This document shows, piece after piece, positions 2,113 through 62,714 of a stretch of 64,000 bases of DNA. The DNA comes from Podarcis vaucheri (taxonomy: Eukaryota): the NCBI GenBank assembly GCA_965113315.1, contig OZ220370.1; one strand, written 5' to 3'. The notes beneath the pieces are model-generated. The model saw only the letters and a program-made list of their open reading frames with translations, was not told the origin of the DNA and made no database searches. The stretch's first letter is position 1. Every line of letters starts with the position of its first letter. Made by a program: the position numbers and the translations under genes.

Positions 2113-4638
2113 ATGGGAGACTGCTTCAGGAGAAAACAAGGTCTGTATCTTTTCCTTTTCCTTTGTCTTCCTGGAGCATTGTATGTTTCAAGCCATTATT
2201 CTGTGCCTGAAGAAAAGAAAACTGGGTCTTTGGTGGCTAATGTGCTGCAGGATTTGAAATTGGGAACAGGGGAGCTCTCTGCTCGCAGAGCCCAGCTAGT
2301 GTCCAAAAGCGCTAAGCAATATTTCCACCTTGATACCCACTTTGGGAATCTGCTGATAAGCGAAAAAATAGACCGAGAAGCTTTATGTGGCCAGACTGAT
2401 CCTTGCTTATTTCTCTCACAAATTGTGCTGGAAAACCCATTAGAGCTCCACAGTATTGTAGTCAAGATAGAAGATGTGAATGACAATGTTCCCAAATTCT
2501 CAACAAAGGAATTTGATCTGGAAATTCCTGAAAATGTCTCTCCAAATACACATTTCCCACTGGAATCTGCCCAAGATGAGGACCTAGGGAGAAATAGCAT
2601 CCAAAATTACACTCTCAGTCCCAATGAACATTTCCGCCTCGATGTTAAAAGTGATGAGGATGGAAACACGCATGTGGATCTTGTCCTGGAGAAGCCACTG
2701 GACAGGGAGAAGGACTCACACTTTGGACTGACTCTCATGGCTGTGGATGGAGGGGAGCCACAGAGAACAGGCACAGTTCAAATAAATATTGATGTTCTTG
2801 ACATCAATGATAATTCCCCACAGTTTACTCATTCTGAATATAAAGTAAAGTTAAAGGAAAACAGCCCACAGGGCACTCTGGTCTCAAAAGTGGAAGCTAC
2901 AGATTTGGATTTTGGTTCAAATGCACAGATCACCTACTCATTCCACCGGATGCCTGAAAAAATAAACAATTTGTTCCACCTAAATGAAGTCACTGGGGAA
3001 ATCACTCTTTTAGGACAAGTTGATTTTGAAAAAGAAACCAGGTATGACATGAAAATTAGAGCAACAGATGGAGGGGGTCTTTCAGGGCACTGCAAGGTTT
3101 TGGTAGAGATTGAGGATGTGAATGACAATGCACCAGAAGTGTCGGTCATATCCATCACTAGTCCTTTGGCAGAGGATTCTCCCCTGGAGACACTTGTGGC
3201 TCTCTTCACTGTCACAGATCGAGACTCCGGAGACAATGGCAGAACCATGTGCTCTGTGGAGACAAACCTTCCCTTTGTCTTAAAACCCACAATGGATAAC
3301 TATTACCAGCTTGTGGTCCAAAGTCCCTTGGACAGAGAGAAAGTCTCAGAGTATAATATCACCATCACAGCCGTAGACCGAGGCTCCCCCAGGCTCACTT
3401 CAACAAGAATTATTAATGTTCAGATCTCAGATGTCAACGACAACCCTCCAGTATTTGAAAAATCTTCATGTGAAATGCAGATACGGGAAAACAATATTCC
3501 AGGACTGCTCATTGGCTCAGTCCATGCTGCTGATCTGGACACCGAGAAGAATGCCAAGGTCACCTACTCCCTTTTGCCTGGGAAGGTCACTGATGGCCTT
3601 GTGGCCTCTTACATCTCGGTCAACTCTGAAAGCGGAAATCTGTATGCCCTCCGATCTCTGGATTATGAGCAGATCAAAGATTTCAAAGTGACGGTGAGGG
3701 CTACAGATGGAGGGTCTCCTTCCCTCAGCTCAGAAGTTACTGTCCGAGTCGTAATCCTAGACGAAAACGACAACGCTCCCTTCTTCCTCTACCCTCTTCA
3801 GAACAGCACATCCCCCTGCAATGAGCTGGTGCCCAAGTCGGTGGAGGCCGGCTACCTGGTCACCAAGGTGGTGGCTGTGGATGGAGATTCTGGCCAGAAC
3901 TCGTGGCTTTCCTATGAGCTGCTGAAGGCCACAGACCCTGGTCTTTTCAGCATAGGAGCCCAGAATGGGGAAGTGAGAACCAGGAGAGCCCTGAGCGAGC
4001 GAGACACCAGCAAGCAGAGACTCCTGATAGTGGTCAGGGACAACGGGCTCCCTCCCCAGAGCAGCACTGCCATGCTCCATGTCCTTCCCGTGGGTGGCTT
4101 TTCGGATCCTTATATGAAGGCTGTGGAGGTCAGGAAAGAGGAGCACAAAGAAGATGGGACCTTGACCTTGTACTTGGTGATCTGCCTGGCTGCAGTCTCC
4201 TTTGTGTTCCTCGTTTGCATTGTTTCCTTTGCTGCCATCAAGATCTGCAGGAGGGATCCCAGGGAAAGTTTTATCGCTGCCCCTCCTCACTTCCCACCTG
4301 CCAGACCCGACATCCCAGAGAACGGTGGCGATTCTCAGAGCGGGTCTCTTTCCAGGAGTTACCACTACGATGTTTGCTTAACCGGTGGGTCCTTGAGCAG
4401 CGAGTTCAGATTCCTCAGGCCCCTCATTCCTGTTTTTTCTGTGGGAGACCCAAACCTCAGTGTGAACCAGACCCCTCCGTCTGCTTCCCAAGATATTCCT
4501 GATAATTTGGAGAGCAGGAAGCCAATGGAACAGGTGAGAGAGATTAGTGTTTTTAATACAAATATACTCAATGCACTAGAAAAAATTGAAATCGTCTTTT
4601 CATTTACAGTATCTCCATATTATTCTGTGTTGAAATGA
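2113..4638 (+). CDS. PCDHB: Clustered protocadherin beta-like, subfamily A (A1)
   Basis: Signal peptide, six cadherin repeats (DRE, DxNDNxP, AxDxG), a TM helix and beta-type motifs [32 protein letters not shown]. Donor CAG|GTGAGA after 4533, so the ORF past 4533 is probably intron read-through. Confidence 0.95.
   Translation: [841 protein letters not shown]

Positions 4639-62714: not shown

Follow-up and report, generated by a model that had tools for sequence, protein, structure and literature searches.

The window analysed here, a stretch of 64,000 nucleotides (nt) of contig OZ220370.1 in the Podarcis vaucheri assembly GCA_965113315.1, carries on its plus strand an array of 11 beta-type protocadherin variable exons, six of one type (A) and five of another (B), together with one truncated relic of a B exon. 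At issue in what follows are the splice donors found at the ends of these exons and the sequence to which they would be joined. An open reading frame scan of the window returns 11 long open frames on the plus strand, and along the DNA the exons are ordered A1, B1, A2, B2, A3, the B relic, A4, B3, A5, B4, A6 and B5. Measured from the first sensible ATG to the donor, the A exons comprise 807 codons (A1, 2113..4533; A2, 15052..17472; A3, 26757..29177; A4, 34581..37001; A5, 42895..45315; A6, 53294..55714) and the B exons 808 codons (B1, 10737..13160; B2, 22014..24437; B3, 39925..42348; B4, 50298..52721; B5, 60246..62669), all on the plus strand. In pairwise comparison, identity is 86-95% within A, 84-92% within B and 62-65% between the two types.

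The protein encoded by each exon consists of a signal peptide and six cadherin repeats, followed by a membrane span and by a variable cytoplasmic part of about 90 residues; the Pfam matches are Cadherin_2, Cadherin repeats (5-6 stretches; five in A1) and Cadherin_C_2 at residues 684-770. Such an architecture, in which a single exon of approximately 2.4 kb encodes the six repeats, the one membrane span and a short, variable cytoplasmic domain, is that of the beta subfamily. The ectodomain, too, is nearer to beta than to alpha or gamma. Over extracellular cadherin repeats (EC) 1-4, A1 and B1 score 431 and 428 bits, respectively, with the solved structure of mouse Pcdhb8 and 423 and 427 bits with that of Pcdhb6, as against 372-399 bits with gamma A/B/C and 376 and 359 bits with alpha4. 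Every named top match in the protein search is a squamate ‘protocadherin beta’, including the anole beta set of Jiang et al. (73-76% identity), while A1 searched against representative proteins returned giant fused cadherin models only. Furthermore, the 15 anole genes that lie downstream of the alpha group have been placed phylogenetically with human and coelacanth beta genes (Jiang et al. 2009; PMC2764143). By the EC1-4 scores, the named matches and the published placement of the anole genes, both A and B exons look like beta exons, and the beta identity that an earlier note on this DNA, made from its letters alone, had read from the motifs is supported.

Splice donors, promoter elements and 3′ ends

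All 12 exon ends, that of the relic included, consist of AG followed by GTGAG (11 cases) or by GTGAA (A2). The donor reads CAG/GTGAGA in A1 (after 4533), B1 (after 13160), the relic (after 31531), A5 (after 45315) and B5 (after 62669), AAG/GTGAAA in A2 (after 17472), AAG/GTGAGG in A3 (after 29177), CAG/GTGAGG in B4 (after 52721) and GAG/GTGAGC in A6 (after 55714); those of B2, A4 and B3 follow positions 24437, 37001 and 42348. The distance from ATG to donor is 2421 nt in the A exons starting at 2113, 15052, 26757, 34581, 42895 and 53294, and 2424 nt in the B exons starting at 10737, 22014, 39925, 50298 and 60246; all these lengths are multiples of 3 and, therefore, the donors are in phase 0 and each exon ends on a codon boundary. 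The motif AGGTGAG occurs 16 times on the plus strand of the window, 11 of them at exon ends, and twice on the minus strand. The position of the donor is kept in spite of the variability of what surrounds it: the final 20 or so codons before it are unrelated between A and B, and the read-through beyond it extends for 2-34 codons and differs between older paralogs. The AG/GTGAR consensus at 12 sites, the two fixed lengths in phase 0 and the variable sequence on either side of a fixed donor had all been pointed out in the earlier note, and they hold at the exact coordinates and in the measured exon lengths.

The further claim that all 11 genes share this organization stands as far as the donor is concerned, but not for the reading frame of A5. 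Codon 800 of the 807 in this exon (45292-45294), which is GAG in A1 and stands for glutamate in the Podarcis muralis counterpart, is an in-frame TAG that lies 7 codons, or 21 nt, before the donor, so that the frame is closed before the donor is reached. A polymorphism or a sequencing error could account for the TAG, which could also mark the onset of decay. If the transcript is spliced, nonsense-mediated decay would probably be avoided, the stop being only 21 nt before the junction, and the product would be a beta protein without the tail.

The exons also resemble alpha/gamma-type variable exons in combining a phase-0 donor at the 3′ end with an acceptor-free 5′ end, the only strong acceptor-like site being internal, at codon 564, and in that each appears to have its own promoter with a conserved element. 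An element similar to a CTCF site (of the CACANGGTGG type) precedes each of the 11 ATGs by 232-294 nt; it is restricted to the plus strand and has no further occurrence in the 64 kb. The putative promoter elements are located at 1851..1863 for A1 (CCACATGGTGGCA, 262 nt before the ATG), 10443..10455 for B1 (GCACAAGGTGGTG, 294 nt before the ATG), 14793..14805 for A2, 21753..21765 for B2, 26511..26523 for A3, 34335..34347 for A4, 39664..39676 for B3, 42645..42657 for A5, 50019..50031 for B4, 53025..53037 for A6 and 60014..60026 for B5.

Poly(A)-type hexamers lie 65 nt after the donors of B1, B2 and the relic (13225, 24502 and 31596) and 39 nt after that of B4 (52760), and none is present within 1.6-1.9 kb of the donors of A1 and A6. 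Hexamers after donors occur at background density and decide nothing. The fixed hexamer past the young B-type donors could permit unspliced B transcripts to end locally. Conversely, the hexamer-free stretches after A1 and A6, together with the short distances that separate B3 from A5 and B4 from A6, lend weak support to downstream splicing. These two distances, from donor to next ATG, are of 546 nt (42349-42894) and 572 nt (52722-53293), respectively, each containing the promoter element of the downstream exon; the others are of 1.9-6.2 kb.

With regard to individual members of the array, B2 has a second in-frame ATG at 21981, 33 nt ahead of the one at 22014 that is consistent with its type. 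This upstream ATG is the start used by the P. muralis model XP_028594031.2, and isoform X1 models (858 residues) of P. muralis and P. raffonei begin at its equivalent (MPCISGGEAGRMEM...). The relic (31301..31531, plus strand) is a 5′-truncated B exon, of which only the last 77 or so codons are left, followed by the start of the intron, with 31301-31710 being 95% identical to 24207-24615 of B2. The unit that holds it (29178-34580) is a damaged copy of the B2-A3 unit, 32416-34580 being 91.5% identical to 24601-26756; about 700 nt separate the two matching blocks, and no match to a B exon is found in this unit upstream of 31301.

A common 39-residue tail in squamate gene models

Many RefSeq ‘isoform X’ models of squamate beta protocadherins, of 840-858 residues, end in one common peptide that begins right after the residue equivalent to the last one before the donor. 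An A-type junction reads ...DQAGKEESEEK/ARASLSEDAAPRSGAPGCIVNQATGANINCSQNDWLTYQ, and lacertid B-type models carry the same junction (.../ARASLSED...). The tail directly follows the donor-equivalent residue in 47 of the best 120 matches listed. It is seen in a total of 20 squamate species, from geckos to snakes, with cordylid, phrynosomatid and two snake species included. Its length is 39 residues in 18 of the 20 species, and 36 and 40 residues in the remaining two; the position of the stop is constant and 10 columns are invariant. In lacertids it takes the form ARASLSEDAAPRSGAPGC.VNQATGANINC.QNDWLTYQ, followed by the stop.

For each exon of the window, the best lacertid match is 91-97% identical over all 807 or 808 residues and, for 10 of the 11 exons, one of the top three matches continues into the tail after residue 807/808. 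Tail-bearing models include P0121, 94% identical to B1 and 95% to B2, P0009 (93% to A2), P0122 (95% to B3), P0124 (97% to B4), P0014 and P0013 (96-97% to A6) and P0123, P0127 and P0129 (94-95% to B5), as well as P0311, which is 94% identical to A5 and free of its stop. In the anole, XP_016848527 and XP_016848528 agree residue for residue, as far as position 807, with beta1 and beta2 as published in single-exon form (DAA06578 and DAA06579); beyond it, the two XP models carry the tail and the published ones read through the intron. Among tail-less models, 51 of 66 have V followed by R, S, N or K at the junction point, as expected of a GT donor that has been read through. Tail-bearing records are present in both the NCBI RefSeq and the UniProt listing for P. 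muralis, Salvator merianae and Anolis carolinensis.

The tail has no match in Pfam, and the spliced models P0009 and P0122 show no Pfam domain beyond residue 781 or so, i.e. after Cadherin_C_2. Roughly 170 squamate beta models were inspected: they end in the 39-residue tail, in read-through or in an adjacent variable exon to which an ab initio prediction has fused them, and in none of them is an alpha/gamma-type constant domain attached to a beta exon. The tail exon itself is not within the 64-kb window, where tblastn of the tail matched only the EC6 segments described below. No tail was found outside squamates with an anole-type query, and a lacertid query returned lacertids only, but such word-based searches cannot show absence elsewhere; the search of a protein atlas gave no usable match for the tail.

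Colinearity of the tail with EC6

In each of the 11 exons, the sole match of the tail in tblastn is the start of EC6, with E values down to 6e-7. Tail residue i corresponds to exon residue i + 563 without gaps over the whole tail, which thus covers residues 564-602 of EC6; an example is the alignment of the tail of the A-type junction quoted above with the 39 exon residues 564-602. In the DxDSGQN motif, both calcium-binding Asp residues are replaced by Asn in all tails. Smith-Waterman scores of the tails of eight species against the exons are 48-80, compared with 30 +/- 4 for shuffled tails, and for seven of the eight tails none of 400 shuffles reached the observed score. The same register is recovered with a hidden Markov model of the tail run on the exons (7.5-12.3 bits) and by profile-profile alignment of the tail with the exons (hhalign, P = 4.5e-6).

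Tail residue 1 corresponds to codon 564, which directly follows a YAG; of the 20 nt before this YAG, 18-19 are pyrimidines. The codons for PFFLYPLQ or PFILYPLQ, at the border between EC5 and EC6, spell CCTTCTTCCTCTACCCTCTTCAG, i.e. a pyrimidine tract and a CAG that ends in phase 0, so that a latent acceptor is written into the coding sequence of the live exons. The codon-564 site is the best acceptor-like site of every exon and, in all B exons but one, no other site exceeds the threshold. Sites in which a YAG follows 20 nt with a pyrimidine content of 90% or more number only 13 on the plus strand of the whole window, and 11 of them are the codon-564 sites. The other two, at 46180 and 55888, are both intergenic, the latter being 174 nt past the A6 donor. 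On the plus strand, the tail-colinear segments (codons 564-602), each with its latent acceptor, are at 3802..3918 in A1 (preceded by CCTTCTTCCTCTACCCTCTTCAG), 12426..12542 in B1 (preceded by CCTTCATCCTCTACCCTCTCCAG), 16741..16857 in A2, 23703..23819 in B2 (the best match, with a Smith-Waterman score of 80 against the anole tail), 28446..28562 in A3, 36270..36386 in A4, 41614..41730 in B3, 44584..44700 in A5, 51987..52103 in B4, 54983..55099 in A6 and 61935..62051 in B5.

The tail is colinear with EC6 residues 564-602 and starts at the best acceptor-like site of the exons; therefore, as judged from the sequences, the constant exon is probably a recycled fragment of a dead, decayed variable exon. 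An origin from an alpha or gamma constant region was considered and set aside; the EC6 match covers all 39 residues gaplessly.

In Crotalus horridus, an ab initio model runs from a beta donor straight into the codon-564 point of a neighbouring exon. The ab initio models P0002, P0005, P0007, P0017 and P0021, which come from Phrynosoma, Naja, C. horridus and Gekko kuhli, fuse neighbouring beta exons via their donors into chimeras of 940-1400 residues, some of which enter at the EC5/EC6 latent acceptor. Such fusions are likely an annotation hazard, or else a hint of real junctions.

Alternative readings and known protocadherin clusters

The reading that we favour, with a probability of roughly 80%, is that of a beta array whose donors are spliced in cis to a short beta-specific terminal exon, itself probably a fossil piece of a variable exon. 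As is known for the alpha and gamma clusters, transcription would start from one chosen promoter and run downstream; splicing in cis would then link the donor of the first exon, in frame, to a single shared exon that terminates the transcript and lies beyond the array, outside the window. This terminal exon would add 39 residues and the stop and, presumably, a common 3′ untranslated region (UTR). It would derive from a variable exon that had decayed at the end of the array and was taken over as terminal exon via its latent acceptor (...CCCTCTTCAG), a stop having appeared after ...SYQ, and its role may be that of a common cytoplasmic docking peptide and/or of a common 3′ end of the mRNAs. That the squamate beta constant exon is approximately of crown-squamate age, and was born from codons 564-602 of a dead variable exon by use of the latent acceptor, seems to us somewhat likelier than its contrary. 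The earlier note had proposed in-frame splicing to a downstream constant region, either that of gamma or one specific to beta, giving a long shared cytoplasmic tail. The beta-specific target is retained on the basis of the models of 20 species, while the gamma target is not, and the long tail has to be given up for one that is of 39 residues in the models, has no Pfam match past residue 781 or so and is not a constant domain of the long alpha/gamma type.

Several observations weigh against splicing to a beta-specific exon. The anole beta subcluster was described as constant-exon-free by Jiang et al. (2009), who confirmed the splicing of delta, alpha and gamma transcripts by reverse transcription PCR (RT-PCR) in anole brain (PMC2764143), and in mouse beta transcripts are unspliced, with no spliced beta product (Hirano et al. 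2012; PMC3431597). The tail-bearing models are computer predictions, with which single-exon read-through models of the same exons coexist; the tail exon is absent from the window, its acceptor, its stop and any decayed flanks being deduced from proteins only; and the identity of the tail between distant squamate families is only 54-74%. Finally, the stop that precedes the donor in A5 indicates either that the tail is dispensable for at least this copy or that the copy is dying.

Among the alternatives, the one that fares best is that the donors are unused leftovers, the beta mRNAs being, like those of mammals, unspliced and locally polyadenylated and the tail in the models being an artefact of the annotation of a pseudogene fragment. 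The description of the beta cluster as single-exon in the literature, the existence of read-through models for the same exons, the AATAAA or ATTAAA hexamers 39-65 nt after four B-type donors and the tolerance of a stop before the donor in A5 would all suit such an explanation, but, with flanks that vary freely on both sides, the donors still match the consensus in all 12 copies here and across most beta exons of 20 species, and tail length, frame and stop are constant from geckos to snakes, with tail records in both databases for three species. Indeed, local polyadenylation would also have to be accommodated in A1 and A6, which are hexamer-free for 1.6-1.9 kb, and within the 546 and 572 nt, promoter included, that are available after B3 and B4 before the next ATG, and leftover donors are, in our judgement, improbable.

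Less probable still is that the donors splice the beta exons to the downstream gamma constant exons, thus conferring the long gamma cytoplasmic domain. Phase 0 is the phase of the alpha and gamma variable exons, and a descent of beta from gamma exons has been proposed (both in the review PMC7811963), but an alpha or gamma constant domain is found in 0 of the approximately 170 squamate beta models, no Pfam domain follows Cadherin_C_2 in the spliced ones, and RT-PCR in mouse gave neither a beta-to-alpha nor a beta-to-gamma constant product (PMC3431597), so that a gamma target appears very unlikely. That the exons are really gamma-type, and their donors ordinary gamma donors, can hardly be credited: two alternating types that are 62-65% identical do recall the interleaving of mammalian gamma-A and gamma-B exons, but both types score higher over EC1-4 with mouse beta6 and beta8 than with every gamma or alpha structure, both are named beta and share the beta tail without any gamma constant domain, and their anole counterparts are placed with human and coelacanth beta in the published phylogeny.

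The variable exons of the alpha and gamma clusters are reported to be spliced in cis to shared constant exons (Wu and Maniatis 1999; Tasic et al. 2002; reviewed in PMC7811963), and beta genes are reported by Vanhalst (2001) to be single-exon genes without constant exons. Such a single-exon, constant-exon-free definition, drawn from mammals, does not fit the array discussed here, with its 12 of 12 consensus phase-0 donors and the tail in the models of 20 squamates. The absence of a beta constant exon is stated in general terms by Etlioglu et al. (2016) and in the 2020 review by Wu and Jia, where the origin of beta from gamma-like exons that ‘lost the ability to be spliced’ is presented as an open question (PMC7811963). 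A full-text literature search found no paper describing a beta constant exon and, as far as that search reached, the beta junction is present in public gene models yet apparently undescribed in print; new here are the B-type junctions, the A5 stop, the extension to snakes, the finding that tail-bearing anole models are identical to published exons and the probable derivation of the tail from EC6.

A squamate beta cluster with working-looking donors and a short constant exon would represent a living intermediate for the question of how beta derived from gamma, and lizards and snakes would make beta proteins with a shared C-terminus, probably from mRNAs with a shared 3′ UTR. If the constant exon does date back to crown squamates and derives from a dead variable exon, the beta exons never lost their gamma-like donors, the latent acceptors of live exons may sometimes be used for exon-to-exon splicing, and the EC6 origin would neatly illustrate how a tandem array can build a new exon from one of its own dead paralogues. 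On the practical side, the combination of donors and internal acceptor misleads ab initio gene predictors into fusing adjacent beta exons.

The squamate array can be compared with three known systems. With the alpha and gamma clusters it shares tandem variable exons of about 2.4 kb, each with its own CTCF-like promoter element and phase-0 donor, and one shared downstream piece; however, their constant part is of approximately 125-150 residues, encoded by three exons, and forms a cytoplasmic domain, whereas the lizard tail, known from gene models only, has 39 residues, belongs to no Pfam family and is apparently a fragment of EC6. In mammals, anole and coelacanth, the beta cluster has been described as unspliced and without a constant exon. 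The squamate array resembles it in the ectodomain, which is nearest to mouse beta6 and beta8, and in the EFRFLRP-type cytoplasmic motif, and its anole members are the very exons named beta1 and beta2 in the 2009 paper, but the description itself is contradicted by the models of 20 squamates and by the donors conserved here. The third system is the exonisation of pseudogene or repeat fragments, of which the literature search found no published protocadherin case. In common with it, a coding piece out of its context would have been made into an exon by means of a pre-existing pyrimidine tract and AG; unlike it, the source of the fragment would be a paralogue in the same tandem array, and an extracellular beta-strand would have been turned into a cytoplasmic C-terminus.

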